Below are positions 1,790 to 39,256 of a stretch of DNA of 64,000 nt, piece by piece. Position 1 is the stretch's first letter. Each line of letters starts with the position of its first letter. The stretch is taken from the NCBI GenBank assembly GCA_038087875.1, contig CM075978.1:102176001-102240000 (forward strand), given 5' to 3'. Below the pieces are notes generated by a model. The model was not told where the DNA came from and did not search any database. It saw only the letters and a list, made by a program, of their open reading frames with translations. This DNA comes from Malacoraja senta (taxonomy: Eukaryota). The translations under genes and the position numbers were made by a program.

Positions 1790-3860
1790 TAAATAATTAT
1801 CCTGTCACAAACTTCATCAATAAGCATGTTAGGACTGTGTGCCAAATAAGTCATTTCGACAACTCCAATGGGAAACAATGATGAACCACGAGATCCACTC
1901 ATTAGTGAGGTCTGAGATGATCAAGTCGGGCAATCCCAACCTGTGTAGGAATTCTAGGTACAGAAAATCTTCAGGGACTCCAAGAGACAATTCTAAACCA
2001 AGCTATAGTTCCAGACCAACCAAACAGACACCTGTCGATTGTGATAAAGCACACATTTTAATTATTAGCTCTGCCTTCAACACAATAATTTTAAACAATC
2101 TCATCTGCAAACACCTGGACCTAAGATTCAAAGCAAAATTAGGCAAAATCATGTTGGAGTAACCCAGTGGATCAGACAGCATCTCAGGAGAAAGGGAATA
2201 GGTGATGTTTTGGGTCTCACCTATTCCTTTTCCCCAGGGATGCTGCCAGACCCGCTGAGTTACTCCAGCATTTTCTGCCTATCTTCGGTGTAAACCAGCA
2301 TCAGCAGCTCCTTCCTACACTCAATGCATTCCATATTCATTTTGAATAGAAGGTCATTGGAATTATGTCACCAACCCCGACAGTCTTGATTGCACCGGTA
2401 CCCACAGTCAGACCGGCCTTCCATGGAAAGCAACTAGCCTTAATGAATCCTGGCTGTGTCCTCAGAACCTGTGTGGACAGCTTGCAGGTTCACACTTGCT
2501 TTTAGAAGACTACAATCGTCCCGGTACCAAAGAGAAAATGGTAGCATGCCTTAATGACTACGGTCCGTGGCTCTTGCATCCACCTTCATGAAATGCTTCA
2601 AGAGTCTGGTTATGGCACACATCAACTGCAGTCTCCCAGACAGACTTGATCCACTGTAATTCACTGACTGCTGCATCAGGTCCATTTCAGACACCATCTC
2701 CTTGGCCTTACACTCATCCCTGGAACAAGAATACCCACTGCAACTCCTATTTATTGACTATAACTCTGCCTTCAACACAATAATTCTAAACAATCTCATC
2801 TCCAAACCCCTGGACCTAAGGTTCAGCACACACCTCTACAATTGGACCCTTGACTTCCTGACCTATAGATCAGCAATCAGTACGGATAGGTGACAAAAAC
2901 ATCCTCCATGTTAATTCTTGCCACCAGTGCCCCACATGGCTGTGCTCTCAGCCCCTTGCTGGAACACTTATACACTCAAGACTGTGTGACCAAATCCTAC
3001 TCTAACTCCATTTGCATATTTGCAGTTGACATATATGAGCCGGATCTCAAACAATGATAAGACAAGCTACAGGTAGGAGATTGAGAGTTTAGTGGACAAT
3101 AACCTCTCCTTCAATATCAGCATAACAAAAATGCTGATCAACGACTTCAGGGTGGAGTGCACATCTGAGTCTGTACCAAAGGAGATTGTCGAGAGCTTCT
3201 AGTTCCTGGGTATAAACATCAGCGACAATTTGTGCTGGTAGAACCACATTGATGCTATGTCCTAGAAAGCACAACAATACTTCGATTTCCTCAGCACTAA
3301 TGAAATTCAGCATGTCTCAACAACTCATATCAATTTCTATAGATGCAACAGAGAAGGCTCTCGACCCAAAACATCACCCATTCCGTCTTTCCAGAGATGC
3401 TGCCTGTTCAAATGAGTTACTTCAGCATTTTGTGTCCATCTTTGGTTTAAACCAGCATCTGCAGTTCCTTTCTACATAGAAAACAACCAATCTGGATTCA
3501 TCACAACTTGGTTTGGCATCTGTTCTGCCCAAGTCCACAAGAAATTGCAGAGAGTTGTGAAAACAGCTGAGTTCATCACACAAGCATCTTCTTCCCACCA
3601 TCGATTTGATTTACTCTTCCCACCATCGATTTGATTTACTCAGGAAAACAGCCAACATCATCATGGAGCACTCACACCCCAGTTATTGTCTTGCCTCCCC
3701 TTGACCACTATGCAGAAGGTCCAAAAGCTTGAAGCAATAGACCATCGTGTTCAAGAACAGCTTTGTCACTGCTGTTAGCAGGTTGTTGACCAGACCCCTC
3801 ATGTGCTCAGAATGAATTCCTGATCTTCTAATCTACTTTGTTGCAGGCCTTGCTTTTTCT
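1790..3860 (+). mobile_element. Degenerate Rex1/Babar-type LINE with nested Penelope-derived inserts
   Basis: Broken RT motifs (CLNDY, MAHIN, ALHSSLE, LFIDYNSAFNTI, FLGINISDNL) with many stops and frameshifts. Confidence 0.75.
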
Positions 3861-5965
3861 TATCTGCACTTTCCCTGTGGAGATAGATAGATAGACTCGG
3901 TGGGCATGTCAAACTGTGCTAAACTACAAAAGGGGTGAGAAATGAAAAAAAAAGTTATATGGTCAATTGGTCTATAAAATGTCCTTTTGATATAGTTAAT
4001 AAATAGATCAAATTATTGATATTTTTATAGAAAGTGTGCATCTGTTTATTTTGAATGAATTTGTGTGTTTTTTTGCATTATCAAATGTAGAAATGTGAAA
4101 AGAATGAATCAAAGTAAAATGGCTGAACCACTATTTGCAGGGAACACAGAACAATTTGGGGAAACTACTGGGAAATGTGTGTTACAGGTTTTCAAACCCC
4201 AGCTCAATAATTACATATATTTGTTTAATGCTTACACATCTGCATATATATTCCTGGGAGAGTAATCACACTCAAGAACTAACAGGTAATTCAATGCTGT
4301 TGCCATCTCTTAAGATCTCTGAATCTGATTCCTTGGGCATAAGGGTAACTCTGCATTTGGTTTCTTACCCAAGCTGAAATGTTTCATTGTTTGACATTTG
4401 CCATAGTTTAAGTTAATTGAAGTCCTTGATCTTGACGTCTTTGAAGGTACAGCATGAAGAATCTTTACTCTGTGGGTGACTACTCTTGTGTTTCAGAAAG
4501 AATAAAGTGACGGACACAAAAGTTATGATGATGCCATGGTAGTGCTGATCAGATCTGAATGCATATTGGAATAACATTAAATCCTTCCATTGAAAATTTG
4601 TGATTTTACCTGCTCAATTACCTTGATTTATCCAGCTATTAATAAAGCTACTCAAATAGTTTTAAGTAAACAGTTTGTTACGCCTTGTCTATCAAAGTTT
4701 CCCCAGGGGGAATTGCTCCTCAATAAGACAAAAATTAATGGTTTGTAAATCTTATTTCACTGCCTTAAGGCACCCTCTAGTGGGGATTTTTCACAGTATG
4801 ATATGGTTTATTCATTTTATTTTTCATCTATATGTAATTCAGAAAAGTCAACAAATTGATAACAGAGCGTGGGGAACATTAAGCGTGGGGAAGCAAGTAG
4901 ATGCAAATGCCTCACAGTAAAGCTAGACTGTCCCAGGGAAGAAGAAATAATAATTATAGCAAACATTTTATTCTTATTAGTGTCTTTAATTCATAGTCAA
5001 ATAAATCATAGTTACCACTATTCTATTTTTTTATTCAAGGTTAGACATTCACGTGCACCTCCTCTAACCTCATCTACTGCATCCAATATTCCAGATGTGG
5101 CCTCCTGAACATCGGCAAAACCAAGCAAAAACTCGGTGACCATTTGGCTGAATGCTTGCACTCAGTCTGCCAAGGCCTACTGGATCACCCAGTTGCTAAC
5201 CATTTTAACTCCTGTTCCTAGTCCCATACTAACCTTTCTGTAGCTTACAACCCAACGGTATGAAGATTCCTTCCTTCCTTCCTTCCTTCCTCCCTCCCTC
5301 CTTCCCTCCTTCCTGTCTGTTTAGGGGTCTAGAGATTTTCTGACTCACAATAACAAAGTTATTCTTCCTGAAGGATTTTTAAAAATAGAGGTCTTTTCAG
5401 TAGCAATACGTTTAATTTTATTACACAAGCTAAAATGCTAAAAGCTGTATGTTACATTGTTTATCAGAGTATCATTGCACAAGTGTCAGTAGAAGTGATT
5501 GCTGGTCCATTTTATACACAAAAAGCTGGAGTAACTCAGCGGGTCAGGCAGCTTCTCTGGAGAACTTGGATGTGAGGTTTTGGGGCGGGACCCACTGTTG
5601 TAGTAGGGGAGAGTGGAGAAAACAACTGGAAGCTAAAAAACAGGACAAATTAGGTCCAGCAACAGATTACCTCAGGCAAGGATAGGCTGATTTTTGGCTC
5701 GAGATTGATGTGAACCCGAGATATACATAGTTGTGAACTGTGGAGATAGTTCATGGACTTTTAGTGGAGGAAGAGGGGGAAGGGCGGGAAGAGTGGGGGG
5801 GGGGGTGGGGGGGGAATGTATTAATATTCATTTATGCTGTCTTAATTTCTTAAATTACTGAATTTTGCCTGCTATGTGAGGGCTTACTGGAAATGAAAAG
5901 AAAAGATGGAGTTTTGTAGAGGCAAGATTTAAGCAAAGGCAAAGAAGATATCCTTTGTTAGATAG

Positions 5966-6061
5966 AGTCTGAAGAAGGGTCTCGACCCGAAACATCACCT
6001 ATTCCTTCGCTCCATAGATGCTGTCTCACCCGCTGAGTTTCTCCAGCATTTATATCTACCT
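5966..6061 (+). mobile_element. 96-bp Penelope-derived mini-insert with hammerhead core and 15-bp TSD
   Basis: TCCTTTGTTAGATAG at 5951-5965 and 6062-6076. The insert begins AGTCTGAAGAAGGGTCTCGACCCGAAAC. Confidence 0.8.
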
Positions 6062-6070
6062 TCCTTTGTT

Positions 6071-6212
6071 AGATAGGTTGCCTTTGTCCATGTCTTTGGC
6101 CGAACAGCTTTGTGGTAGATAGGTTGCCTCTGTCCATGTCTTTGGCCGAACAGCTTTGTGGTAGATAGGTTGCCTCTGTCCATGTCTTTGGCCGAACAGC
6201 TTTGTGGTAGAT
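6071..6212 (+). repeat. 46-bp tandem repeat, 3 copies
   Basis: Unit agataggttgcctctgtccatgtctttggccgaacagctttgtggt, starting at 6071, 6117 and 6163. Confidence 0.9.
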
Positions 6213-7263
6213 GACTAGTTAATGATAGCATCCATTGGTTGGCCTTTTTCTTCAAGAACATTGTTGAGGAACTTGCTTAAGCGATAAATAAATTATTGAA
6301 ACAAAGGCTGAATACTGTGGATCCTGAAGTTTGACATAAAAATAGAATCTGCTAAAAACACTGAGCAGGTCAGGCAGCATTTGTGCAGAAGGGAAGATCC
6401 AGTTCAACCAAAATCTCACCAACACAAAATGTTAACTATTGCTGCCTGATCTGCTGTGTAAGTTCAACATGTTCTGTTTTTATTTCAGAGATCTAGCATC
6501 TGCAATCTTTTGCTTTTTAATTTACATTTCAGCTTGATGACCTATCAATAGAAGTGATTAAATGTTTTCATAAAAGATTACCAATCTAAAATGTAAATTC
6601 TGCTTGTTGTTCTGTACAAAATGTTCCTAGTAAGTATTGCTGGCACATTTTATTTTTTGTATTTAGGCCTAGATAAGTATCACCAATCAAATCATTTCAA
6701 TCAATCAAAATAAACCTGTGATAAAATGTATAGGAACCATCTACACATAAACTCTGATCTTGTGCTCTTCCCGTTTGCATGGACTTTCTATTTGCGCAAA
6801 AACGGTACATGATAGCGCTACGATTTTGCACCACCTTACTCACCATTCCCCTGTGCTGCAAGTGCAACAAGTTTTGTTCCGATCGATGGTATATTTTAAA
6901 AAGTTATTAAGCTTTAAAAATCTTTAAAACCGCGCATGCGCAGATTGGTTTCTTCTCCTGTCAGTCAGCGCCATGCAGATTGGTCTCCTCTCCTGACAGT
7001 CAATGCCACAGCCGGGGTGACGACGCCCCTTCCTGCACCACGGCCTCTCCTGCCTCACTCACAAACTCCTCTCACCCCTCCTCACAGTAACCTGTCTACC
7101 GTCTCCCCCACCACCGGCGGCGGGGGTTCAGTGGAGGCCTGTCTCTTCCTCACTCACCTCTCTCCCCCGCCCGCCCTCTGCGGCAATAGCGGTCCCGTCT
7201 ACCCATCTCCAGGGTGAATGGCTGTGATCATCCGTCTCCTCCTCCGCCACTGCGGTAACTCAC

Positions 7264-7341
7264 CCTCAAGGCCCTCTCGGAGATCTTCTCCACCAGCTCG
7301 TCGAAACTCATGGTGCCCACCGTGATGAACACCAACTCCAT
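7264..7341 (-). pseudogene. ALG13: ALG13-like exon-1 fragment (MELVFITVGTMSFDELVEKISERALR) with GTGAGT donor, inside the Helitron
   Basis: Matches the ALG13 N-terminus (human MKCVFVTVGTTSFDDL...). ATG plus a phase-0 donor after 26 codons. I could not see ALG13 exon 2 in 1-7260. Confidence 0.75.
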
Positions 7342-7595
7342 CCCCCCCCCCCCCCCCGTGGACCGGCCCGGCAGCGGCAGCGAGCAGGCAGGCAGGTAGG
7401 TGGGTGGGCAGGGTGGGCAGGGTGGGGACGGGCCAAGCAGTAGCAGCGGGCGGGCGGGCAGGGTGGGGAAGGGCCGAGCGGTAGCAGCGGGCAGTCCAGC
7501 AGGAAAGGGATGGGGCCGAACGGCGGCTGAGCCGGAGTGGGCAGAGAGAGGGAGGGAGAGTCGGGTTACAGGGTGGCCGAGTAGTTTGCGCGGAT

Positions 7596-8030
7596 TTTTT
7601 TTATTTTTTATTTATTTATTTTTTTTTTTTATTTTTTTTTTATTTTTTTTTTTATTAGAAGTACATTACATTACAACCACATACATTAATACTCGTCATT
7701 TATATCTTCTTACAATTAATGTACTCCCTTTATTTATTTTTTTACACTAGAGAAAGAAAAGATTGAAAGAGAGAAGAAAGTGAAGGAAAAAGTGCAAGTG
7801 TAGAAAAGTGTAGAAAATGTAACAACAAAAAAGGACGAAGACCCTATAAGAGCGAAATTAAAAACAAAAAGAAAAAGAGTTAAGAAATAGGCCCTAAGAA
7901 AAGAAAAGAGAAAGAGAAAAAAGAGAAACAAATGTTTTTTTTTTTGAGCATCACGTAAATAGGACATACCAACTCTTCAACTATCATCCCCCCTTACCCG
8001 ACCTCAATTTTTTATTTTTTTTAAAGTACT
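7596..8030 (-). mobile_element. L1-like 3' end with poly(A), nested in Helitron 1
   Basis: Poly-T tract followed by tttattagaagta..., matching the L1 3' end near 21755. It runs into the gap. Confidence 0.55.
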
Positions 8031-8230
8031 NNNNNNNNNNNNNNNNNNNNNNNNNNNNNNNNNNNNNNNNNNNNNNNNNNNNNNNNNNNNNNNNNNNNNN
8101 NNNNNNNNNNNNNNNNNNNNNNNNNNNNNNNNNNNNNNNNNNNNNNNNNNNNNNNNNNNNNNNNNNNNNNNNNNNNNNNNNNNNNNNNNNNNNNNNNNNN
8201 NNNNNNNNNNNNNNNNNNNNNNNNNNNNNN
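8031..8230. other. Assembly gap (200 N)
   Basis: Run of N. Confidence 1.
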
Positions 8231-9063
8231 GGATAATGGGGGGGATAGGGGGAGGCGAGTGGGAGATAGAGGGATAGGATGGGGTAGGGAGGAGAGTGGA
8301 GTTATGGAGTGACTGGGAGGGGAAAGGAGAGGAATGGAGATTGAGGGAGGGATTGGGGGAGGAGAGGAGGAGAGAAGGAGAGGGGGAAGAAGAGGGAGGG
8401 TGAAGAGGAGGGGGAGGGAGTGCTGGGGGATGAGGGGAAATGAGCCGCACCTGCCCAGTTGGGGGCTATGCGTGAGTGGTGGAATATTGCGTTGGGGGAA
8501 TGGGTTGTGTTGGGGGAACGTGTGAGTGGTGGAATATTGCGTTGGAGGAGGCAGACCCAACGGGTCTGCGCTTTGTCTAGTTCCTATTAAAATCAAAGTT
8601 CATGAAGTGAGTAATGGTGTATCTCCAAATTATATAAAGATGTGTTAAAACAAGTATTTCAGAATTCAACAAAACTTCCCAGATATTACATTTTAAACTT
8701 TGTTATCTTAAAAAGTAGGTGTGGCCCTAATAATAGGTGTAATTACTATCACTGTATGTTTGATTCTTATGGAAGTTAATACATATCTATTACCTTGAAG
8801 AATGACAAAATTAATGAGTGTGTCCAATCCTTAACAAAACTAGCATAAAATTAGAAATCTATTTTTATCCTAATGTCGTAGTTTGGAAGTGGTGCTATTG
8901 AAGCCATGAAAAACTATAAAAAAGTCAGAATAAACATAAAAACAAATGTTTGAAATGTAGCCTTTTCCTACACCATTCCTCCTTTCTTCAGCTTTTAAAT
9001 TGGATTTGGCAATGGTGACAACCTATTGCTAAATATCTATTTATATCTATCTATCTATATCTA

Positions 9064-12000
9064 TCTATATTATATTAAAACTCTGTGGCTGCCATCCGTT
9101 TGACTTGTGTCTGCCATCAAATCCCCTTTGATACCGCCCTAGGCCCACACAGCACGCGGAAACGCCGATTTTTTTAACCATTTCTAAAGAGATTACATTT
9201 ATCTTTACGAATAGACACTCCTGATTAAATTTGGTTGTTTTTATGTACACTTTTTAAAATAAAATACTTCTCCCCCCCCCCAAACATTTCAAAATGTTTT
9301 AAAAAAACAGCTCAGCCATAGAATGTTAGTAAAGATTCCGTTGTGTGATGTCACAATGCCCAATGCTCACAGATGTCCAATCGGAATGGATCCATTTACA
9401 TATGCCTTTGCGGCAGCCCCAGCCCCAGCCCCTCCCCCCAACCCCACAGCCTGTGTCGAAGGGCGTCGTCACGTGTGTGGGGGTGATAGGGAATGGGGAC
9501 ATTTCAAAATGTTTACAAAACAGCTCTCAGCAATAGAATGTTAATGAAGGTTCCGTTTTGTGATGTCACAATGCCCAATGCTCACAGATGACAAATCGGA
9601 ATGGATCCAATTACATATGCCTTTGCAGCAGCCCCAGCCCCTCCCCCCCACCCCCGCAGCCTGTGTCCAAGGGCGTCGTCACATGTGTGGAAATAGAGAA
9701 AGAGGATTGGGGGTGATAGGGAATGGGGAACAGATGGACTGTCCCTACCCCTCCTACTTCCACTCTCCCTCCTCTCTCCTCTCCCCTCCCACACCCTCTC
9801 TTCCCCCTCCACCACCCCTCTTCACCCCCATCTTCCCCCCACCCCCTTCCCATCTCTCTTGCACCACTCCCCGCTACCCCTCTGCCCCTCACTCCCCACT
9901 CTTCCCCTCTCCCTCCCCCACCTGTCTCCCTCCACCCTCCCTCTCTTCCCCCTACTCCTCTCCCCTTCCCCTCATCCCCTCCCCACTCTCCCCCCTTCCT
10001 GCCCTCCCCGCTCTCCTACCACTCCCCACTCACATCCCCCTACCCCCTCCCCACCCTGCTCTCTTCTCCCTCACCAATCTCTCCCCTTTCCTCCTCCCCC
10101 TCTCCCCTCCCTCCCCCCTCTCCTCTTCTCTCCCCACCCCATCTCCCTCTCCCCTCTTCTCTCCCCACCCCGTCTTCCTCTCCCCCGCCTGTGTTTGGGG
10201 GGTGGTTAGTGCGAGTGTGATGCCGCAGCACCCCCCCCCTCAAACGCGCGTTGGGGAAACAGCCCGCCAACAGTCTCTCTGTCTTTAAGACGGAACTGCA
10301 GATGCTGGAAAATCAAAGGTACACAAAAAAAACCTGTATAACCTCAGAGGGTGCAGCAGCATCTATGGATCAAAGGAAATAGGCAACGTTTCGGGACAAA
10401 ACCCGTCTGAGGATGGGTTTCGGCCAAAAGAGTTGCCTATTTCCGTCGCTCCATAGATGCTGCTGCACCCGCTGTGTTTCTCCAGCTCTTTTTGTGTGTA
10501 CCAGTCTCTCTGTCTCTCCCCTCTCTCTCTCTCTCTCTCTGCCCTTCTCTCTTCACAGCCCGCGGATCGAATCATGCACGCCCGCTCCAACAATGGTTTT
10601 TTTTTCTAACATAAAATTTTCTCTCTCTGCCCCCCCACCCTCGAGATGCACCTGAGAGGTGAGGGCTATTCGTCAGTGGATAGGGTGGAGATGGGATAAA
10701 AGAAGAAAATTAAAATATTAAGATAATATCAAGGGGTGTGATGAGTGTGTATGTTTGTTGGCGCCAGATTCACACCCCGCAACCATGCTTTGGAGGTACA
10801 GACCCAACGGGTGGGTGGTTAGTGTGATGCCGCAGCCCCACACCCCCCCCGCAAACGCACATTGGGGAGACAGACCCAATGGGTCTGCACTTGGTATACT
10901 TTCAAATCTGTGTGTCTGTGTGTGGGTGTACGGCATTTTGCCTTTGAAACGTATCTCCTCGAAAATCAGATGCAAAAATGCGGAGATTTTTACAATTTCG
11001 GTAGGGATTTAACATGAGTTCAGAAATCCACTCCTTGGTCAATTATTTCCCCAGATTTTGAATAAAATTGTTCACAAAACTCAAATTTTAAAATATAAAT
11101 GCGGCTCACCAGCTGCTGACGTCACAATGCCCACATGCCAACCAATCCAGGCCCACCTGCGTCCTGGCCCCGCCCCCCGCCGCTGTGGATTAAAGGCGCA
11201 GAATTATCGAGAAAGTTCTGCAGAACAAAGATTCTACAGTTGCGTTCCGCTATAGCTTCTTTGGTCTACAGATCTCGGGGCAGCGATTCCTCATTCGCTT
11301 AAAAATCTCCTCATAAGTTCCGCTGAACTTTCTCCTCACAGCCGGAGCAGCTTGCGCGCCCCTCCTATCCCCTGCGTGCTCATTCCAGCTGTGGGTTTTC
11401 AGAGAGTCAGAAGCCGGTGCTTCTTTGCTATGAACGCTCGCTACCGGGCAAACGCGTCTTGCCTTAGCGGCTTTAAAGGGCTGTTGTCAGCTGGCAGTTA
11501 TCAATGGCTGCGGGCGTCGCGAGGCCGAGTTACGTCAACACCCCCCCCCCTCTGATGCGCGCTGGCATTTGGCCCTCTGACTCCTCCCTGTTCTGTGTTC
11601 CTCTCTGTGAACGAGCAAGTTCTGCAGATCCGGAGGACAGGCGAGATCCTGGGGAGGTGAAGAGGGGGGATTGAGGGAGAGGAGGGAGTAGGGAGGGAGA
11701 GGGGGGAATGGGGGAGGTGAGGAGGGAGAGTGTGGAAATAGAGGGAGAGGAGTGGGGGGTGATAGGGAGTGGGGAATAGATGGACTCCCTCCCCCCCTCC
11801 ATCCCCACTCTTCCCCCTCTCTCCCCCTCCCTCCCCACTTCCCCCTCTCTCACCTACCCCATCTCCCCCTCCCTCCCCACTCTTCCCCCTCTCTCCCCTT
11901 CCCCCTCTTTCCCCTTACCCCTCTCCCCTCCCCTCCACACTCTTCCCCCTCTCTCCCCTACCCCATCTCCCTCCTGCCCTCCCTCCACCCCTCCCCTACC

Positions 12001-12500
12001 CCCTTCCCTCCACCCCATCCCCTCTCCACCCTCCCTCCCCCTCCCCCTCCCTTCCCCCCCACCTCTCCCCCTCCCCTTCCCTCCCCCCCTCTCAGTCCCC
12101 CTCTCTCCCTCTCTCTCCCCCTCTCTCTCCTCCCCTCTCTCTCTCCTCCCATCTCTCACCCCTCCTCCCCCACCCTCCCTCTCCACCCCTCCACCACCTC
12201 TCTGACTGTCCCTTGCCCTTCTGACTCTGCCCCTTTCTCTCTCTCTCCCCATTCTCTCTCTGCTCTCACTCTCTAGCCCCCCCCCATCCCTCTCTAGATG
12301 CGCCTGCGAGTTGGGGGCTATGCGTCAGTGGATAGGGCGGTTATGGGGTAAAAGGAGCAAATTAATAATATTAATATAATATCAAGGGGGGTAGTTAGCG
12401 TGTGTGCGGGGGGGGGAGTTAGTGTGTGTGACGCCGCATGCCGCCAGCCCCCCCCCCCCCACCTGCAACCACACGTTGGGGGAACAGACCCAACGGGTTC
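9064..12500 (+). mobile_element. Composite or tandem Helitron-like array with several 3' ends
   Basis: 5' TCTATATTATATTAAAACTCT after a (TCTA)n run. Repeated 3' modules GTTGGGGGA..CAGACCCAA(C/T)GGGT lie at about 10250, 10800, 10870 and 12485. Internal duplication of about 220 bp (9283-9700) and polypyrimidine tracts. Confidence 0.65.
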
Positions 12501-21729: not shown

Positions 21730-23457
21730 TTTTTTTTTTAATTTTTATTTTTTATTTTTATTAGAAGTATTTTACATTACAGTTATCTGTAATAACATAA
21801 CATAATTTTATACAATTCTTGTACCACTTCTGTTTTTCAACTTTAATAGAAAGAAGGATAGAAAGAGCTAGCAAAGATAGTCAGTGAGTGAATGAAAGTG
21901 GTCCAGGAACACTCTTGTGAACCTAAACCACAAGAAGTAGTTAAATAAGAAAAGAAAAAAAGAGAAAAAAGAAAATAAGATAGGACAATATGAAAGGGAT
22001 GTGTCTACTTCTTATCTTTACTCACCCCTCGCCAGATCCTAAAACCATTTATTATCAACATTTTGTTGCACCCTATGTTTGTAATAAGTCGATATATGGC
22101 GACCAAATCTTTTGGAATTGGTCTTGTTTACCTGCTAGGAGGACTCTCATATCTTCTAAAGTGGTGGCGCTGTCGAACAGCAGCGGCTCGCCTGCAGTCC
22201 GTCTGTTTTTACTTTTTTTGTTGTTTTCTTTTGTCCTAAAAAGGTTGTGTATGTGTGGGGTGGGGGGGGGTGAAACATGATTTTTGTCTCTTCCTTCGGG
22301 GGAATGCGACTTTTTCTTGTCGTATCCCCCTTCTCTGCCTCCGTCTGCGCCGAGGCCTAATGGCGGAGCTGCCGGCCTCCAACTCCAACTGCGAGCGACC
22401 GACCTCGAGGCTCCGGAGGCAGAGCCAGGACTTACCAGCGCGGGGCTGGCCTGCTTCGGGGCTGCGGTGGCGTTCCGGCGGTGGCGACCGAGGACACTGG
22501 TGGCGACCTGAATCCGGAGGCTCGGCCGCGGGCCCGGTGGACGACATCGTCGGGAGCTCGCAGGTCACAGGTGGGTGACCTGTTTTTCTGGAGCTCCCGC
22601 AACTACAGCTGCGTCCGCTGGACTGGAGGGCGGCAGCTTCGGCAGCTTCGGCCACCCTGGGCCGTGGAGTTTGAACCGGATTCAGCCGCGGGATTGACTT
22701 ACCATCACCCGGCGGGGTCACAACATCAGAAGCCTGGATCGCCTCAGCGCAGAGGAAGAACAAAGCGGGAAGAGACAGAGACTTTAAGACTTTTGCCTCC
22801 ATCACAGTGAGGAGGTGCCTGGTGAACTCACTGTGGTGGATGTTAATTTGTGTTTATTGTGTGTTTTGTTATTTATTATTATATGTATGACTGCAGGCAA
22901 TGAAATTTCGTTCAGACCGAAAGGTCTGAATGACAAATAAAGGAATCTCTAATCTCTAATCTCTAAATGTAACAATTCCGACATATTAGAAGTCCACATT
23001 TTTATTGTTGGCGTAGGAGCATTTTTCCAAAATTTCAATATCAGTTATTTTGCCGTTAATAAACCATAACTAAGAAAACTCCATTGAAACGCAGTCAGCT
23101 CCAAACTTGCTTCTGTTGTTCCAAAAATAATCAGTTCTGCATTCGGTTTCAATTTTATTTTAAATAATTTAGAGAAAATTTCAAAAATTTCATTCCAACA
23201 TTTTTGAATTTTTATACAAAAGACAAAAGAATGTGCTATAGTTGATTCTTGGACTAGGCATTTATCACAGTTAGCCGAGGTATTAGGGTAAAATTTACTT
23301 AATTTAGCTTTTGAATAATATAATCTATGTAAAATTTTAAATTGAATCAGAGTATGTCTTACGTTAATCGAACATTTATGCACATATAATAGATGTCTAT
23401 CCCAACTCTCTTTCGAGATTTTTATAGCTAGTTCCTGTTCCCATTCTCTTCTAATCC
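21730..23457 (-). mobile_element. 5'-truncated L1-type LINE with poly(A) and TSD
   Basis: ORF2 C-terminus QFKILHRLY..CDKC..HSFVFC (CCHC). Poly-T at 21730-21762. TSD CCGAGTATAGAAGTT at 21717-21731 and 23458-23472. Confidence 0.85.
22161..22966 (+). mobile_element. GC-rich non-autonomous retroelement with LINE-type tail, nested in the L1
   Basis: Starts GTGGTGGCGCTG and ends AATAAA followed by (AATCTCT)n. A related 5' head lies at 46300-46505 (-), and related tails at 44270-44770 (-) and 57750-58260 (-). Confidence 0.65.
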
Positions 23458-24724
23458 CCGAGTATAGAAGTTGAACTGGGACTTGCAGGATAGGAGACTG
23501 TTAGATGGTCTTACAGAGGTGCATAAAATCATGTGAAACATAGATAGGATGAATGAATACAGTCTTTTTCACAGGGTTGACGAATCAGGAACAAGAGGCA
23601 AAGATTTAATATGATAAGTGAATGTTTTAATAGGAACCTGAGGGGCAACATTTTAGAGGAAGGGTGGTATTTACATGGAATGAGTTGACATAGGAAGTCG
23701 TTGATGCAGGTACAATTAGAATATTTAAGAGTAATTTGGACTAGATATGCGCATCTTGGTCGGCATGGACAAGTTAGGAAGAAGTGCCTATTTACATGCT
23801 GTACAACTATGACTATTTCTACTCCACTTTATGATGCTGATGTTAATAGTTTTTGGAAAGATATTGTCCCACTGTATATTCATACTGATACATATATTTT
23901 GTAATTTTGTTTTAATCTAAAAATATTTTATTCATTCCAAAAACGAAAATGCTGATGATCTGATAGGACTTGCCTGTGTCCCATGTTTACACATACTGTA
24001 TTTATGGCCCACTGAACACAATCATTACCTGTAGGATTACCTCCTAATTTTAAAATATATCACATTCAGAACTGCAGCAGTTTAGGAAGGTGGCTCATCA
24101 TCACCTTCTCAAGGGCAATGCGAGATGGGCAAAAACAGTGTACCTTGTCAGTAATGCCCAGATCCTAAAAAAACCATGTAATTTGTGATCAGCAGCAAGC
24201 AACCTGGTGATCATGCAAGTCCAAACAAAGTTTGTGTTTATCCGCAGGAATCTGTAGGAGAATATTGCCCGCCATTTCCTGCAGGTCGACAGGACTTTCG
24301 GTGAAATAATGTCATCACATAAGTAAAGGGACAGAAGCAGAACAGGTCCCATCAATAAGTAGGAGAAAAAAAATCACACTACTGTCTTGGCCAGATCTGT
24401 CAGTCTTAAAGCACACACGGCTAAAAATGTGGTCGCTTGGCATTGACCTTCTTCGAGCTGCACGTATGAAAGTCAATGTTTTCTGGAGTGGAAAATGATA
24501 TTGATGATTTTCAGATTGAATTGTGCCTCTCTAAAAATGAAGCTGGGCTCTTAATGTTGCAAATTGTGCTTTCATAGATGAGTGAATTTCTGTGTTAGAT
24601 CCAGATGTAACAACATAATTCCCAATGAAACTCAATTTGAGATTGCTGGTGGAAATTAACACCCATTGTCCTGATATGTACTTGTCTTAGGGCATTCACA
24701 GCTCAACCAGGTTTATATTGCAAG

Positions 24725-26422
24725 TAGACAAAAGTGCTGGAGAAACTCAGCGGGTGCGGCAGCATCCATGGAGCGAAGGAAATAGGCAACGTTTCGGGCC
24801 AAAACCCTTCTTCAGACTGATGTAGGGTGGGAGGGGGGCGGGAAGAAGAAAGGAAGAGGAGGAGCCAGAGGGCTGAGGGAGAGCTGGGAAGGGAAGGAGA
24901 CAATAAGGGCTACCGGAAATTGGAGAAGTCAATGTTCATGCCGCTGGGGTGCAGACTGCCCAAGCGGAATATGAGGTGCTGCTCCTCCAGTTTCCGGTGG
25001 TGCTCACTATGGCCATGGAGGTGGCCCAGGACAAAAAAGTTGGATTTGGAATGGGAGGGGGAGTTGAAGTGCTGAGCCACTGGGAGATCAGATTGGTTAT
25101 TGCGGACCGAGCGGAGGTGTTCGGCGAACCAATGTAGACCAGCTGACATCTAGAGCAGCGGATGCAATAGATGAGGTTGGCGGAGGTGCAGGTGAACCTC
25201 TGTCGAACCTGGAACGACTGCTTGGGTCCTTGAATGGAATCGAGGGGGGAGGTAAATCGACAAGTGTAGCATCTCTTGCGGTTGCAAGGGAAAGTGCCCG
25301 GGGAGGAGGTGGTACGGGTGGGAAGGGAAGAATTGACCAGGGAGTTACGGAGGGAGCGGTCTTTGCGGAAAGCAGAGAGGGAGGGAGATGGGAAGATGTG
25401 GCGAGTGGTGGGGTCACGTTGGAGTTGGCGAAAATGACAGACTATTTGTTGTATGTGATGACTAGTAGGGTGGAAGGTGAGGACTAGGGGGACTCTGCCC
25501 TTGTTATGAGTGGGGTGATGGGGAGAGAGAGCAGTGTTGCGGAGTATGGAAGAGACCCTGGTGAGAGCCCCATCTATAGTAGGGGAGGGGAACCGCCGTT
25601 CCCTGAAGAATGAGGACATTTCTGATGCCCTGGTGTGGAACACCTCATCCTGGGAACAGATGCGGCGTAGACGGAGGAATTGGGAGTAGGGGATGGAGTC
25701 CTTACAGGAAGCAGGGTGCGAAGAAGTGTAGTTTAGATTGCCAAGGGAGTCAGTGGGTTTATAGTGGATGTCGGTCAGAAGTCTATCTGCGATGAAGATA
25801 GTGAGGTCAAGAAATGGTAGGGAAGTGTCGGAAATGGTCCAGGTGTATTTGAGTGCCGGATGGAAGTTAGTGGTGAAATGGATGAAGTCAGTGAGTTGTG
25901 TATGGGTGCAGGAGGTAGCACCAATGGAATCGTCGATGTAGCGGAGGTAGAGGTCGAGGATGGGGCCCTGGTACGTATTGAACAAGGATTGTTCGACGTA
26001 CCCTACAAAGAGGCAGGCATAGCTGGGGCCCATGCATGTGCCCATAGCTACGCCTTGTATTTGGAGGAAATGGGAGGAGTCAAACGAAAAGTTATTAAGG
26101 GTAAGGACCTAGGCGGAGGAGAGTATCTGTAGACGGGGATTGGTTGGTTCTCCGGTCGAGGAAGAAACGGAGGGCTTTGAGACTCTCCTGGTGGGGGATG
26201 GAGGTGTAGAGTGACTGGACATCCATGGTGAAGATGAGGGGATGGGGGCCTATAGAACGGAATTCCCGGAGATGACGGAGAGTGTCTGAGGTGTCTTGAC
26301 CATAGGTCGGGGGGGATTTAACCAGGGGGGATAGGATGGAGTCGAGGTGTGTGGAAATAAGTTTGGTAGGGCACAAACAGGCAGAGACAATAGGTCTACC
26401 AGGACAGTCAGGTTTGTGGATT
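24725..26422 (-). mobile_element. Penelope-like retroelement (RT plus GIY-YIG endonuclease), disrupted
   Basis: MDVQSLYTSIP, MGTCMGPSYA, YLRYIDD and NLIYCIRCSRCQLVYIG; terminal repeat with a hammerhead core. Confidence 0.92.
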
Positions 26423-26681
26423 TAATATTGCAACTTGCTCTGCTGCAATTTAATGGGGGCTTCTCTGAATAAGTCCCTAACTTGCAGCTGAACGAATCTG
26501 CAAATAATTTCAAGATATTTACTTATAGGCTCTCTTCTGAGCTTTAAGGGCCTCTCACGAGTCTGCGGTTATTGCCAGAGACCGCGGGCTCCGTCAAACG
26601 CACAATTCCGGGGCCGTGCGGCATTGTTCCCACGGTGCTAAAAAAAAACAACACTGTCCAAAAATATGTTCCTACCGGACA

Positions 26682-26942
26682 GCCGCCGCCAGTGAGGCAC
26701 GAGTGCGGCACGGTCACCGCCACAGCCGTCGCCAGTGAGGCACGAGCGCCGTGAGTCGAACCTGCACCGACACAGCCTCCGCCAGTGAGGCACATGTGCG
26801 GCACGGCCGCCGCCACCAGTGAGGTACGTGTGCGGCACGGCCGCCGCCACAGCCGCCGCCAGTGAGGTACGTGTGCGGCACGGCCGCCGCCACAGCCGCC
26901 GCCAGTGAGGCACGTGTGCGGCACGGCCGCCGCCACAGCCCC
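26682..26942 (+). repeat. GC-rich 43-bp minisatellite, about 6 copies
   Basis: AGTGAGG recurs at 26691, 26734, 26784, 26818, 26861 and 26904. Confidence 0.88.
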
Positions 26943-27935
26943 GCGATCCGAAAGACGTCATCAGCCAAAACCGCATGCTCGTTGAACCGGCCGTACTTGG
27001 CCCCCCGCGCAGCATCCGTGTGGTGCTCTTGTGGTTGCCGTGCGGTCACCTCTTCCGGCGACGCCGCGCTTCACCGCCAACGACCGCAAACCCGTGGGAC
27101 AGAGCCATTACCCTCCCATGGCTGTATTCAGCCAATGTAATCAAGTATCACTTACACCCCAGTTATTTCCTCTTCTCCCTGGTCCCAAAGATACAAAAGC
27201 TTCAAAGCACAAAAAACAGCTTCTTCCCTGATGTTATCAGACTATAGACTGGACTTCTCATCAGATAAGGATGAAGTTCTCCCTCTTGTAAACCATGCAC
27301 TTTTTCTGTAACGCTTTATTCTGCACTCTGTTTCCTTTCTCTTTGCCCTACCTGTTGTACTCATATACAGGGTTTTACTGTACTCATGTATGCTGTTCCT
27401 GGATTGCACGCAAACACATTTTTTACACTGTTTCTTGGTACATGTGACGATAATAAACCAATACCAATATCAATGTTACTGAATCCCTTGTCTCAAGTCC
27501 TGGCATTCACCGAGCTATTGACTCACCACTTATTACATCGTCCAACATCTATATTACTAAAAGTCTGATCTTGACCACTTCCTGTTGTGCTGTATATTGA
27601 TTTTAGAAAAAACGCTGCCACTTACGGCTGTGATTTTTGGCCATCTTACTCAGAGTCCCCCTCCGCTGTGCAGGACAAGAGGATTTTCCCCATCGATTAC
27701 AAATAAAAGAGTTATTAGTGTTTAAAAAATGTTGAGATTCTCTCTCCTGAAGGCCACACCCCTTCCAGAGGGACTATAAAACCCGGAAGTGTTGAGTGCC
27801 TCAGTCAGTCTCTGCAAGATGAGGGAAGCGAGAGGGTCACATCTCTCAGTCTGAGCTGTGAATAACACTGAACACATGTCTACTGAGTGTGGTTTTACTG
27901 ACCTTGAGTGCCCTTAATGTGGTTTGAAAATGAAA

Positions 27936-28082
27936 GTGGTTGGTTCGAAATAAAGCACAGCAAATGGTTGTTGGTGATGGTTGGTTCGAAATAAAGCACA
28001 GCAAATGGTTGTTGGTGGTGGTTGGTTCGAAATAAGGCACAGCAAATGGTTGTTGGTGGTGGTTGGTTTGAAATAAAACACA
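27936..28082 (+). repeat. 41-bp tandem repeat, about 3.5 copies, inside Helitron 3
   Basis: Unit ggttggttcgaaataaagcacagcaaatggttgttggtgat. Confidence 0.85.
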
Positions 28083-28486
28083 GGATTAAAAGTCTAAACT
28101 TGACAACTTCCTGTTTGCACTCTATATTGATTTTAGATAAAACACTACCACTTACGGCTGTGATTATTGGCCATCTTACTCAGTCCCCCTCCGCTTATCA
28201 GGTGCAGAGGATTCTTCCCATCAATGAAAAATAAAAGTGACATTAGTGTTTAAAAAATGTTGAGAATCTCTCTCCTGTCAATCACGCCATGAAGGCCACG
28301 CCCCTTCTGGTGGGAGGGGGGAGGGATTATAAAACCCAGAAGTGTGGGTGTGGCTCAGTCTCTGCAAGATGGGGAAGGGAGAGGTCACGACTCTGTCTGA
28401 GCTGTGAATCAACTGAACACACTGAATGCCCACTGAACTGTGAGTGTGGTGTTTATGTGGTGTTTTGTGTGGTTTTATGGTGATTT

Positions 28487-28935
28487 CACCCTGCTTGAAA
28501 TGGTATGAAACTGCATTTGAATGGGGTGGCCTTTCACCCTGCATGAAATGGTATGAAACTGCATTTGAATTTGGTGGCCTTGCACCCTGCATGAAATGGT
28601 ATGAAACTGCATTTGAATTTGGTAGCCCTGCACCCTGCATGAAGTGGTATGAAACTGCACTTGAATTCGGTGGCCTTGCACCCTGCTTGAAGTGGTCGGA
28701 AACTGCACTTGAATTCGGTGGCCTTGCACCCTGCTTGAAGTGGTAGGAAACTGCACTTGAATTCGGTGGCCTTGCACCCTGCTTGAAGTGGTAGGAAACT
28801 GCACCTGAATTTGGTGACCTTGCACCCTGCTTGAAGTGGTATGAAACTGCACTTGAATTTGATGGCCTTGCACCCTGCTTGAAGTGGTAAGAAACTGCAC
28901 TTGAATTTGGTGGCCTTGCACCCTGCTTGAAATGG
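28487..28935 (+). repeat. 48-bp minisatellite, about 9.3 copies, inside Helitron 3
   Basis: Unit caccctgcttgaagtggtaggaaactgcacttgaattcggtggccttg. It explains the 16-aa periodic ORFs. Confidence 0.92.
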
Positions 28936-31309
28936 AATTTCAAGGAATAGCCGTGAGTCATCTGCCAGCCCACCAGCCGTGAGTGAGCTGCCAGCACATC
29001 AGGCTTGAGTGACTGAGCTGCCACCCCAAGAATCCATCTGGCCCACAATGTGCATACTAGCCCTCTGGAAACCAGTACCTTCAGCCCACAACACCCATAC
29101 TAGCGCTCCAGAAAGCCTCCCCCCCCCACAGGCCACTAATATTGGAATTGGTGGAGAGGTGGAATATTGCGTTGGGGGACCAGCCCTCCCGTGTGAACAT
29201 GGGACCCCAACGGGTCCCACTTAGTCTAGTACCTCCTAGATCAAATTCACAATATGATCCCAAGTCTCTGATTACACATTCTCAATTCCCCCCTCCGTAT
29301 CACCAGCGTTCAATCACTCTTGGGTACATACATAAATAATATAGTAAGATTAGGATACATGGAGTGACACATCAAAGCACATCTGTCACTGTACTCCACA
29401 TTGAGTGCTGCAGGAGGAGCTCATTCTGTTGTGGTTTTGCAGCGCAATGCCTCTCCCTTTCTGCATTAGTCAACCCTGGAACAGGATGGAAGTCCCCGTT
29501 AACTTGAATTTAAATTAGATGGGGAAAGGTAAGTTTGGTTATTTAGAATTTAGATATTTACCTTATTTTCTTTTGTTATGTATTTCGTAGAGTGCATTGG
29601 TATTATTTTAATTAAATCAATATTATTATTTTTACTTCTTTATTGTTTAATTATTTTAACCAATTTTAATGGTTTTTAAATGCCCCTGAATATCAAAGAT
29701 GTTTTGGTGATTTGACAGGTTTTGTTAAAGATTGCACATTTAGCTTTGTCTCCAGTCAAGGGATGTTAGTGCATTCATTGGCTAACATTGCTGAATATGC
29801 CTGACTGAACAATTCCCTTTTGTGCAAGGTCAGTTTATTTACCCCTCTGCATTAGCAGGACTCATGTCTGCAGACAGGCGGGCAGACAAACAATGAGTGT
29901 TGTAAGGAATCAGTATGGACAGTGAGCAGTATTCATTTTCTCCTGTTTGCTAGTATTAGTTCCAGAAAATATTTTTCGGGAGCTTAATCAAGAGGAGCTT
30001 AAATATGAGAGCAACTGGCTAGAAATTAAAAACAAATTATAAAAGATTTTTCTTGGTAAACCAAAAGATTAGTGAGAGTAAATATAGGAGCTTTATCTGC
30101 AGAGATGTAAAATTGTAATGGGCAATAAATAACTGGCAGAGGCCTAATAAATAGTTTGCAGCATTCATCATATTTAAAGATACAATTTCAATTTCAGAGA
30201 TAATAGTAAACCAGGGTTCGAGATTTAGAAAATAAGGAATAAAAGATCTGCTTTGGTCGAAAAAGTGCTATAGAAATGAATAGTACTAAAAGCACATGAT
30301 CCTCTGGACCTTGAACCAGCAGAGGTTGCAACAGAGGCACTGAGTCTGAGCTTATAGAATTCTTCAGGTCATTTTCAGCTTTGTAAACTATGACTAGTAG
30401 GATATCAGAAGTTTATAGACCCAAAATTCTAGAATAACTCAGCAGGACAGGCAGCATCACTGGATAGAAGAAATGGGCGATGTTTCTGGTCGAGACCCTT
30501 CTTCAGACTGAGAGTCAGGGGAGAGGGAGTTACTGAGATATGCAAGTTAATAATTGCTGGAATCACTCAAGGATTAGTTCTGGGTCTCAGCTATATACAA
30601 TCTACCTACCAAATTGGATTTCATTTTTCATTTGTCACATTCTTACCATTGACTGGTCCATATAATTTCAGAACATTTTTATTTTTCTTCACAGTTTCCC
30701 ACCTCGCTTTGTAAAACTTGGTAATTATACTCAGCCATCTAGAACTTGTTCCAATCAATGCGATTTTGTGAAAATTCCCATTGTATTAGTGATGGTGCAT
30801 AATACTCTCCCATTAATGTGGTAGCCTGATGTTAAGAAAAAAAACATATAAATTAGATGTGATTTCAAATCTAACATTACATGTTTGGTTTGGGTAGTTT
30901 TTAAATTATTTTGTAGCTTAGTATATTATCTTTCTCTAATTAACTCTGTTGGATTGTATAATTCTTTTACATCGCATTTTGTTGTCAGTTGACCATTGTC
31001 TGATAGTATTATGCAATCCATGACTTCAGCTAATGATAATTGTCCCTCCAATGTTAACATGAACTAAAAAGGTTATTTTGCTTATGTTATAAGTAGCTTG
31101 TTGTTATTTCAAAGACATGGAGTTTGAGCAGCAACATTCCATTTGTATTATGATGGTATTGTCAATTTGTCAAAAGTCGAACTCCGACAGTAATTGATCT
31201 GACAAAGGCATGTATAGAAAAAAAATTATTCCGATCCCCAGAAAATTTATTAGAAAGGATAAATATTATGTTAGTATTCTTTGTATGTGTATGCATATAT
31301 ACAGTATAT

Positions 31310-31345
<36 letters not shown>

Positions 31346-31350
31346 CATGC

Positions 31351-31840
31351 GGCATTCAGAAAGTATTCTGACCCCTTCACTTTTTCCACATTTTGTTACA
31401 TTGTAGCATTATTCCAAAATGGATTAAATTCATTTTTTTAATCATCAATCTACACACAATACGCCATAATAAAAAAGCAAAAACGTAGAATTTTTTGCAA
31501 AGTAATTAAAAAGAAATAACTGAAATATCACATTTACATAAGTATTCAGACCCTTTACTCAGTACTTTGTTGAGGCACCTTTGGCAGCCATTACAGACAG
31601 AAGTCTTCTTGGGTATGACGCTAAAAGCTTGGCACGCCTGTGTTTGGGTAATTGCTCCCATTCTTCTCTGCAGATCCTCTCAAGCTCTGTCAGGTTGGAT
31701 GGGGAGCGTCGATGCACAGCTATTTTCAGGTCCCTCCAGAGATGTTCAATCGGGTTGAAGTCCGGGCTCTGGCTGGGCCACTCAAGGACATTCACAGACT
31801 TGTCACTGAGCCACTCCTGTGTTGTCTTGGCTGTGTGCTT
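31351..31840 (-). mobile_element. Tc1-family DNA transposon fragment (one terminal repeat plus transposase C-terminus)
   Basis: WPSQSPDFNPIEHLW..KGASTKY*. The direct repeat AAGTATTC(A/T)GACCC occurs near 31360 and 31540. Confidence 0.9.
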
Positions 31841-32029
31841 GTGTGCTTGTGTTTGTGTGTGTGTGTGTGTATATATATTCATACTGAATTTTTTTCTTTC
31901 TCATTTATCATATTGTTTACAGTGTACTATGTTTACATATTCTGTTGTGCTGCAACAAGTAAGAATTTCATTGTTCTATCTGGGACATGACAATAAAACA
32001 CTCTCTCTTGACTCTCTTTTCTTCAACAG

Positions 32030-32279
32030 AATCTCCTTTTCTCCTTCGTCCAAATGGCGGATTTTCCAGGACAGATCTCATGGTAGATCGGTTTAATCTG
32101 ACGTTATTTGATCTTGGCAGTGGAGAGAAAATCCGACCTGCTTGGAAGAATTATTACTCTGCAGTCCATGGCTTTATTTTCATTGTTGATTCTACGGATG
32201 TGAAGCGAATAGAGGAAGCTAGAAAGGTTCTATCAGAAGTAATGAAGCATGAAAAGATGTCTGGGAAACCTGTCCTCGT
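32030..32279 (+). CDS. ARL13A: ARL13A coding exon 3, switch I/II (ESPFLLRPNGGF...DLGSGEKIRPAWKNYY...GKPVLV)
   Basis: caacAG acceptor and GT|GTAAGT donor; 250 nt. Contains Arf-like motifs FDLG, W.NYY, GFIFIVDS and KPVLV. Confidence 0.93.
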
Positions 32280-34811: not shown

Positions 34812-34917
34812 ACTTGCAAACAAACAGGATAAAGCTGAGGCCCTACCAGAGTTTGGCATTATTGAACAGATGTCCCTGGGGAAACTGGCTAATGAAAATA
34901 AATCCTTCTGCCATCTT
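34812..34917 (+). CDS. ARL13A: ARL13A coding exon 4, G4 motif (LANKQDKAEALPEFGIIEQMSLGKLANENKSFCHL)
   Basis: attcAG acceptor and GTAAGT donor; 106 nt; NKQD guanine-specificity motif. Confidence 0.93.
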
Positions 34918-35641
34918 GTAAGTTTCATACAGTTATTGCATCATTGAGGAACTACTCACTTTTTTAAAATCATCTTTCACACTCCATTAGTACCCTCTCT
35001 AAAAGAATAATGCTGGATATATTTATCTGTGCCTCTCCAATTCAATAAATGAGGGGCAATGCGTCTATCAAGAGTACAAAGGACACTCATATTTAGGTCG
35101 CGGGCCAATGTTTTGACGTAGACCTGACAGAAAATAGGAATGCTGCTACTGACCTGCAAGGTTTAAGTGTTGGTACATTCTGGCTCCATTCAACTGCATT
35201 GAACGACCCATTTGTATGGGTTCCTGTGGCAGATCCTCTCACTTCTTTTTTTTCTTCGGGTACCCTGGTACTGAAATTCTAACTGATCCTGTTATGTGTA
35301 CATTACGAACCCCATTGCAAAGTACCTGAAAATGTAGATGATAGGAAGGATCTCCTCTGCTGCTGAAGCACACCATTCAATTGTTATTCTGCGGTTCACA
35401 GGTAACTGGATCAACAGGGCAGACAGGGACCTAGCTTCAATCAAGATATGCAGTCAAGGGATAAGAAGGGTAGGTGGGGCGAGAGGTTAACAAGCTTATA
35501 ATTGGCAGGACTCCTGTGAACATTCACAACAGAGATTTCAGCGAATTAGCGCATTTTCTGTTTGAAGCTAACTTTATCTGCATAGTGTGAAAATCCTGAA
35601 GGAAATTGGGACAGGAATATAGGGAACTGTAAATGACCTGT

Positions 35642-38484: not shown

Positions 38485-39256
38485 TGTAAATTGCTCGTTC
38501 TAAGCATCCCCCCAGTCTAGTTTCAGTCAAAAACGACTGAATCAAGCACTTGATCAACTAATCTTTATTTTAACAAAACACAATTACAGTTCAACTACCG
38601 TACCTATCCCACTGCGGGTTCAAACCTCGTATCTGCCTGATCAAGCCCTCTAGGCCTCGCTCAAACAGAGACACTCCAGAAGGTCACGCAGTCCCAAGCA
38701 CTCTCCCAGAAGATCGACGCAGGACCTCATGGTAGCGGACCTTTATAGGTCCCTGGTCCTCGAGGGGCCGAACCACATGGGGGTGGTCTCTTTGCAATCG
38801 AATTACAGATATCGATTAACCCCATACATAACAGACATTTCCCTAACCCAATAATACAGCAGCTAATACATTGAATTCAAACAGGGCTTCTCAAGGAAGC
38901 AAACATAGCAACATTTACCCTGATCTGCAAGAAAACCAGACAAGGCTCAATACTGCATCCAATCAACATTCGGCAAAGTGAAACACTGCAACATTATTTA
39001 CAATTATTTACAAGGTGTATGTCTGGTTTGCCGTCATTCAATCCATTCCATGCATTTTGCACATAATTGACAGGGTCTGCAGATGTTCTTATTCTTTTCC
39101 TGCAGCTTGGATCTAGGCTCTAGACAAACTGGCACCACTCTGCAGCTTGTCCCAGTCCCACAGAGAGCACTTTCAAATTGACCAAATCTCCCAGCAGCCC
39201 AGAAGCTTTTACCCCATTTTAGAGTCCTAGCCCCTCCAATCTGGCCAGGATTAACA
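38485..39256 (-). mobile_element. Solo LTR (772 bp), ERV- or Gypsy-type
   Basis: TG...CA termini and 4-bp TSD TTCC. TATAAA (near 38741) and AATAAA (near 38565) lie on the minus strand. Confidence 0.85.

Follow-up and report, generated by a model that had tools for sequence, protein, structure and literature searches.

Introduction

The closest described counterpart of the element analysed here is HelibatN3, a non-autonomous Helitron of vesper bats, which according to the passages devoted to it in later reports carries the NUBPL promoter, 5′ untranslated region (5′UTR), first exon, splice donor and part of intron 1 (Pritham & Feschotte 2007 as cited in PMC4224331; PMC4778049). HelibatN3 has amplified to about a thousand copies, and promoter activity as well as chimeric transcripts or exon trapping have been shown for it (PMC4224331, PMC4778049). 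Bat Helitrons generally favour the 5′ ends of genes (PMC4224331). Here we analyse a stretch of 64,000 nucleotides from Malacoraja senta (GCA_038087875.1, contig CM075978.1, positions 102,176,001 to 102,240,000), referred to as the window and numbered from its first letter. Positions 6740-8580 of the window are probably one copy of a non-autonomous canonical Helitron carrying a captured first exon of the host gene ALG13.

The terminal architecture used for comparison is that of Helraiser/Helibat1, with 5′-TC and CTAG-3′ ends, a 19-bp palindrome 11 nt from the end, and an AT target, the 3′ hairpin serving as the terminator (PMC4778049). In plants, maize among them, non-autonomous Helitrons carry host gene fragments that can feed chimeric transcripts (PMC4224331, PMC4528327). 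Helitrons have also been placed among the ancestral superfamilies of the vertebrate mobilome by a survey that took in two non-bony vertebrates (PMC4350176). Our literature search found no paper on gene capture by chondrichthyan Helitrons, nor any on ALG13 together with Helitrons; the initial annotation of this DNA, made from the sequence alone, had likewise been aware of no such description.

Termini and boundaries of the element

The 5′ end of the element lies between A6739 and TCTACACAT, so that its TC begins at 6740 on the plus strand and directly abuts the A of the target site (6739, +). The left terminal sequence, which starts with TCTACACATAAACTCTGATCTTG, occupies 6740-7039 (+) and aligns, at a mean column identity of 71%, with sequences beginning at 27548 and 28090 and, on the minus strand, at 41503; within it, a stretch of 34 nt is duplicated at 6940-7008. 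The right terminal sequence, delimited by motif search, alignment and hairpin folding, spans 8441-8580 (+) and holds the motif GTGGAATATTGCGTTGGRGGA twice, at 8479-8499 and 8529-8549. The second of these is followed by a hairpin, GCAGACCC-AAC-GGGTCTGC, at 8551-8569, then by gctttgt, by CTAG at 8577-8580 and by the target-site T at 8581 (+). This 19-nt hairpin (8 + 3 + 8 nt) stands 11 nt from the element end and has a folding energy of -8.8 kcal/mol with z = -3.2.

The insertion thus falls between an A and a T (A6739 and T8581), and no flanking direct repeat was seen. A search of the 64-kb window with the two flanks joined as the query found no paralogous empty site. The flanks outside 6740-8580 are poor in GC (0.29-0.37) and in CpG, with an observed/expected ratio (CpG o/e) of 0.1-0.24. 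The TC/CTRR ends, the subterminal hairpin, the insertion between A and T and the presence of dispersed copies support assignment of 6740-8580 to the canonical Helitrons of the Helitron1 type. Among the window open reading frames (ORFs) of at least 90 aa, only three of which were scanned against Pfam, no candidate for a RepHel, Rep or helicase was seen.

Related Helitron copies in the window

Two complete Helitrons elsewhere in the window share these ends. Copy B lies on the plus strand at 27548-29229 (1682 nt) and is bounded as A/TC...CTAG/T by A27547 and T29230, and copy C lies on the minus strand at 41503-40215 (1289 nt), bounded as A/TC...CTGG/T by A41504 and T40214. The three copies align over their first 230-300 nt, which start TCTAYAY..AAAGTCTGATCTTG, and again over their last ~70 nt, and they share A/TC...CTRR/T junctions. 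In coordinates of the element at 6740, homology is lost near 7040 and recovered near 8470, and what stands between is a different cargo in each copy. A motif search with the 21-nt GTGGAATATTGCGTTGGGGGA gave four matches in the window against none expected by chance. The hairpin of copy B has a stem and loop of 8 + 4 + 8 nt and stands 10 nt from the end; its arms, TGGGACCC/GGGTCCCA, differ from GCAGACCC/GGGTCTGC of the element at 6740 by compensatory changes that keep the pairing. Given two other aligned copies with the same junctions, the termini of the element are not a product of chance. The earlier description of Helitron-type termini flanking the exon is therefore confirmed for the TC, the CTAG, the hairpin and the A and T junctions, all of which recur in the two further copies, with CTGG in place of CTAG in copy C.

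Several other features of this family were recorded. Behind the left terminal sequence, copies B and C each have a TATAAAA box and a short ATG-containing segment ending in GTGAGT, followed by long tandem repeats at 28460-28930 in copy B and 41150-40690 in copy C. Copy B also holds a second, internal left terminal sequence at ~28090. The region 9064-12500 is a composite of Helitron-like pieces. A start of the form TCTATAT..AAAACTCTG is found at ~9064, and the region also has long tracts rich in CT or GA; CAGACCCAAYGGGTCTG motifs resembling a hairpin occur at 10870 and 12485, neither with a clean CTRR end.

The exon and its likeness to ALG13

The cargo of the element at 6740 directly follows the left terminal sequence and extends over 7040-7594, with a GC content of 0.67 and a CpG o/e of 0.59, which makes it CpG-island-like. 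On the minus strand, an ATG at 7341-7339 opens a 78-nt ORF of 26 codons, MELVFITVGTMSFDELVEKISERALR, that runs from 7341 to 7264 and is immediately followed by the consensus splice donor AGG/GTGAGT, the GTGAGT occupying 7263-7258. A run of 16 G residues (7342-7357) stands directly upstream of the ATG, and a 41-nt tandem repeat is found further upstream in the cargo at 7406-7503. Re-reading of the minus strand showed that the initial annotation had placed and described this first exon, with its start codon and its donor at 7263, correctly. The GC-rich sequence downstream of the donor (7040-7263, minus strand; GC 0.63, CpG o/e 0.68) is read as the putative start of ALG13 intron 1, and that upstream of the ATG (7342-7594, minus strand; GC 0.74, CpG o/e 0.65) as a putative ALG13 5′UTR and promoter.

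The likeness to ALG13 was assessed with named ALG13 fragments, which were found by using a human ALG13 N-terminus as the query. This sequence matched yeast Alg13 structures and retrieved named fragments from primates and one bat that were 100% identical to it over the first 27 residues. When two of the fetched fragments, P0002 and P0001, were compared with the window by tblastn, the top match in each case was 7341-7279 (E 6e-5 and 2.5e-4, respectively), and the remaining matches were noise. By BLASTP the exon peptide and ALG13 are identical at 12 of the first 21 residues, counted from the initiator Met. Replacing the Met of this copy by the Thr of the family majority (see below) raises the count to 13 and restores VGTTSFD.

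The position of the donor was compared with mammalian ALG13 read-through gene models (...DSLQ/VSGGG, in which V-S corresponds to GTnAGn). These models end exon 1 after codon 27 in phase 0, and the donor in the window stands after 26 codons, also in phase 0, and is at most one codon away from the mammalian exon end. That ALG13 begins with this motif and has a phase-0 first intron at about this point, as stated in the initial annotation, agrees with the fetched sequences. Among the 100 neighbours returned from Atlas protein-language-model features, 53 carried PF04101, a result that serves as a lead only, with a score below the reliability line. ALG13 exon 2 (SLGYN..LQIGRG) gave no tblastn match anywhere in the 64 kb. 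In sequence, the predicted exon is ALG13-like.

Copy number and linkage of the cargo to the Helitron end

Contigs of four sequencing runs were placed on 2031-8030 of the window at a likeness of at least 80%. Run X1 represents DNA of this same genome, and its exact contigs 2292-3380, 3531-4989 and 6183-6778 have word depths of 21-35. The single-copy baseline in X1 was set at ~35, the unique region 4031-5030 summing to ~37. The contig at 6183-6778 crosses the 5′ junction of the element at single-copy depth.

Within the element, summed X1 depth was 75,000-106,000 over the left terminal sequence (6631-7030), 31,700 over the intron side of the cargo (7031-7230), 20,300 in the bin that contains the exon (7231-7430) and 18,100 over the upstream side of the cargo (7431-7630). 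The exon is covered by 82-88 distinct X1 contigs, with depths of 24,000-41,000 at positions 7269 and 7310. Over the exon, the X1 depth is ~500-1000 times that of single-copy sequence, summed contig word depth being a rough proxy for copy number. Because more than 80 contigs and an excess of this size were found, no room is left for a single-copy gene. The exon region is also present in run X2, and in run X26, which has low coverage and carries another species label, the left terminal sequence and a few contigs of the exon region were found, a hint that the subfamily is shared.

The family majority differs from the copy in the window at two codons. At position 7310, which is covered by 88 contigs, 94% of a depth of 40,841 reads G and not A, giving ACG (Thr11) where this copy has ATG (Met11). 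At position 7269, 94% of the depth supports GTG (Val25) versus TTG (Leu25) in this copy. The former difference confirms, against the family majority, the CpG decay of Thr to Met that the initial annotation had proposed.

Several contigs connect the parts of the element in other copies. Diverged paralogues at single-copy depth (contigs at 7149-7352 and 7170-7342) link the exon to the intron-side cargo, and the paralogous contigs 6865-7084 and 6850-7073 run from the left terminal sequence across ~7040 into the cargo. Since these contigs span the junction, the cargo travels with the Helitron end. Alignments of paralogues start at 6749 and are preceded by unrelated flanks, which matches the 5′ boundary at 6740.

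The assembly gap and the adjoining repeat

Beyond the cargo, an AT-rich high-copy repeat on the minus strand, probably a nested insertion, occupies 7595-8030 and runs into an assembly gap of estimated length, represented by a run of N at 8031-8230. The repeat forms the left edge of the gap, which splits the proposed element, and in the minus-strand reading it has an A-rich tail at 7653-7595. The summed depth of 7654-8030 is ~800,000 in X1 and ~360,000 in X2, with almost none in X26, and 21730-22030 holds another, diverged copy. Assemblers would be expected to leave a gap where a high-copy repeat is nested. On the minus strand the N run is 690 nt upstream of the ATG, a distance at which the exon and its frame are unaffected. 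On the other side of the gap, a GA-rich low-complexity tract (8231-8440, +), similar to tracts beside the Helitron-like pieces at 9700-12200, precedes the right terminal sequence. From the shared orientation, the intact junctions, the AT-rich flanks and a total length like that of the family, we infer that 8231-8580 is part of the same element.

The origin of the AT-rich repeat was considered separately. A contaminant or a piece of organellar rRNA, brought up by a GACGAAGACCCTATAAGAGC motif and by near-identity in a run labelled as another organism, was rejected for 7654-8030 as the second copy at 21730-22030 marks it as a repeat of this genome. The repeat had no match in Rfam, bacterial and archaeal genomes, JGI metagenomes or plasmids. 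About 20 runs under eight other organism labels each contain ~8-13% of the words of 6300-8030. One of these runs, X3, shares the AT-rich repeat near-identically, with 3 differences in 230 nt and none in 87 nt. The repeat could be recently spread or horizontally transferred, or its presence in these runs could be cross-sample carry-over.

Weighing of alternative explanations

Several observations weigh against an ALG13-bearing Helitron that extends over the whole of 6740-8580. An unread gap and a nested repeat stand between the cargo and the 3′ terminus, and the placement of reads covered 2031-8030. The proposed ALG13 origin is drawn from 26 residues and the position of the donor, and the copy number from the depth proxy described above. 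The 26-aa exon gave no significant match in Pfam or the Protein Data Bank (PDB), for which the peptide is too short, and an exhaustive HMMER search with a 30-aa query against 1.8 billion representative proteins returned no hit with E <= 0.001. With so short a query a null HMMER result is expected, and it is no evidence against ALG13. Finally, no old 3′ end separates the cargo from the left terminal sequence, a point that bears on the mode of capture and is taken up below.

These points give room to three other explanations. The likeness to ALG13 could have arisen by chance or convergence, the cargo being some other GC-rich sequence or one born within the transposon family. The shortness of the peptide, the lack of a significant match in Pfam, PDB and exhaustive HMMER searches and an Atlas feature score under the reliability line would fit this account, which we nevertheless consider very improbable: the 12 identities in the first 21 residues start from the initiator Met and become 13, with VGTTSFD restored, in the family majority; the donor and the end of mammalian exon 1 are at most a codon apart and agree in phase; and the region was the top match in a six-frame search of the window at E 6e-5. 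A different reading takes the likeness at face value and makes the exon the genuine first exon and promoter of the sole functional ALG13, with exon 2 to the left of the window and the Helitron-like ends a coincidence. An intact start codon, a perfect donor, a CpG-island-like setting and the ARF-family (ARL13-like) gene to the right on the opposite strand are what such a locus would offer. The initial annotation had itself named a single-copy fragment that splices to exon 2 as the finding that would make this the real gene; instead, the exon is found in more than 80 distinct contigs at a depth hundreds of times that of single-copy sequence, and exon 2 is absent from the 7.2 kb to the left as from the rest of the window. 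In paralogues, too, cargo and left terminal sequence meet 224 nt downstream of the donor, and the conserved position occupied by Met in this copy is Thr in the family majority. In addition, a word-index search for proteins of 70-222 aa among 5.8 billion sequences found none that shares three 5-residue words with the exon region in its 127-aa ORF. Being multi-copy, devoid of an exon 2 in the window and changed from the conserved Thr to Met, the exon is not that of a working ALG13 gene, and this reading is already close to refuted, with hardly any probability left to it.

The remaining account concerns the right-hand side of the element. Here the exon-bearing left half (6740-~7594) would be a Helitron that is truncated or interrupted at its 3′ side, and the right terminus in 8231-8580 would come from a different Helitron-like element, the two being neighbours joined by scaffolding or by nested insertions; the exon would still be Helitron-borne and multi-copy. 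It draws on the unread gap at 8031-8230 and on the other high-copy repeat that abuts it (7595-8030), and the 3′ hairpin variant and the GA-rich tract do resemble the composite at 9064-12500 more than copies B and C. We regard it as unlikely, as the two halves are co-oriented, the A/TC and CTAG/T junctions are intact and both flanks are AT-rich, and once the nested repeat is subtracted, ~1.2 kb and the unread part remain, a length in line with those of copies B (1682 nt) and C (1289 nt). That the termini might belong to unrelated elements across the gap had also been raised in the initial annotation. On the 5′ side this is answered by the paralogous contigs in which the cargo is joined to the Helitron sequence, and on the 3′ side the connection is one that we infer.

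Proposed origin of the element

In the explanation that we favour, a non-autonomous Helitron with an ALG13-derived cargo would have been mobilised in trans by a RepHel transposase encoded elsewhere and inserted between A and T in AT-rich DNA. The cargo of ~555 nt (7040-7594), antisense to the element, would derive from the 5′ end of ALG13 in the host and would comprise GC-rich upstream sequence, the 26-codon exon with its ATG, the consensus donor and ~220 nt read as the start of intron 1. It would sit between the family-wide left (~300 nt) and right (~140 nt) terminal sequences. A single capture in an ancestor element would have been followed by rolling-circle amplification in trans, and depth and contig number show that the ALG13-bearing subfamily reached several hundred or about a thousand copies. 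The copy in the window is decaying, through the CpG transition of Thr to Met in VGTTSFD and probably through insertion of the AT-rich, retroposon-like repeat at which the assembly gap sits. Because no relic 3′ end precedes the cargo, the simple model of capture through 3′-end or terminator bypass does not fit; an exchange of cargo between shared terminal modules looks more likely.

This particular copy probably does nothing. Its donor faces leftward, and the ARF-family (ARL13-like) exon, at ~32.0-32.3 kb, lies in the opposite direction. The family as a whole spreads promoter-like sequence, ATG and donor as cassettes, which by analogy with HelibatN3 could initiate or trap transcripts. A wider and more speculative reading, to which we give a low probability, is that in this cartilaginous fish one Helitron family with interchangeable cargo repeatedly captured host 5′-end modules, each with a promoter, a start codon and a splice donor, and that its ~1000 ALG13 cassettes act as portable promoters or exon traps making lineage-specific chimeric or N-terminally altered transcripts. 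If this were true, it would be an independent vertebrate replay of HelibatN3 and would suggest that 5′-end capture is an intrinsic bias of Helitrons rather than a peculiarity of bats.

Among vertebrates, the documented record of promoter and first-exon capture with subsequent amplification to about a thousand copies comes, so far, mainly from vesper bats, in which such capture seeds new transcripts. A second independent vertebrate case would support a built-in Helitron bias toward gene 5′ ends and would offer several hundred dated insertions for the study of exonisation in a slowly evolving lineage. For annotation, copies of the element will yield false ALG13 first exons and start sites genome-wide, and masking is advised.

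Neighbouring features of the window

The plus-strand exon at 31963-32280 encodes part of an ARF-family small GTPase (Pfam Arf, E 2.5e-20) that looks ARL13-like. The initial annotation had called this neighbour ARL13A; the ARF family is upheld by Pfam and the ARL13 likeness by eye, with ARL13A and ARL13B as candidates. The region 22000-22900, immediately beyond the second AT-rich repeat copy, is GC-rich (GC 0.52 over 22001-23000) and is possibly the promoter of this ARL gene.

To the left of the element, SINE-like repeats at 2231-2430, 3231-3630, 5431-5630 and 5831-6230 have summed X1 depths in the millions; among them, a 46-nt unit is triplicated in tandem at 6070-6212. The many contig joints between these repeats show one family inserted several times in both orientations. 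LINE remnants are found at 50220-52891 (+), 24939-26421 (-) and 35855-36625 (-). The LINE ORF at 50220-52208 contains an endonuclease (PF14529) and a reverse transcriptase (PF00078), and its best named relatives are from the stingray Hypanus sabinus (84%), a sawshark (73%) and a chimaera (70%), in support of a cartilaginous-fish host. The ORF at 24939-26108 had no Pfam match; together with 35855-36625 it was read as LINE-derived by eye.

Comparison with known systems

The terminal architecture and the target rule of the element are those of Helraiser/Helibat1, and conservation of the hairpin stem through compensatory changes fits the role of a terminator. Unlike the autonomous Helraiser/Helibat1, the element is shorter than 2 kb and is without a RepHel ORF. 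Its cargo resembles exon 1 of ALG13, the UDP-GlcNAc transferase subunit (GT28 C-terminal domain, PF04101), in the pattern M..VF[VI]TVGT[TM]SFD[DE]L, in a length of ~26-27 codons and in a phase-0 donor. It differs from the ALG13 gene in that exon 1 alone is present, in the Met that replaces the conserved Thr in this copy, and in being multi-copy and bounded by transposon ends.

Maize Helitrons usually carry internal exons of several genes. The present element is like the gene-fragment Helitrons of plants in being non-autonomous and in having a host fragment as cargo, and is unlike those of maize in carrying a single 5′-end module, as is the case in bats.

The strongest likeness is to HelibatN3, compared here by architecture. 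Both have TC and CTAG ends, a 19-nt palindrome 11 nt from the 3′ end and a target between A and T; each carries as cargo the 5′ part of a housekeeping gene of its host, with upstream sequence, a short exon, the donor and part of intron 1, and the copy number is about a thousand. The two differ in the host, here a cartilaginous fish, in the cargo, here from ALG13, and in the length of the exon, which is 26 codons here versus 6 in HelibatN3; promoter activity and chimeric transcripts are those shown for HelibatN3. By this analogy, the ALG13-bearing Helitron appears as a close parallel of the bat HelibatN3/NUBPL system and not as a wholly new kind of element.

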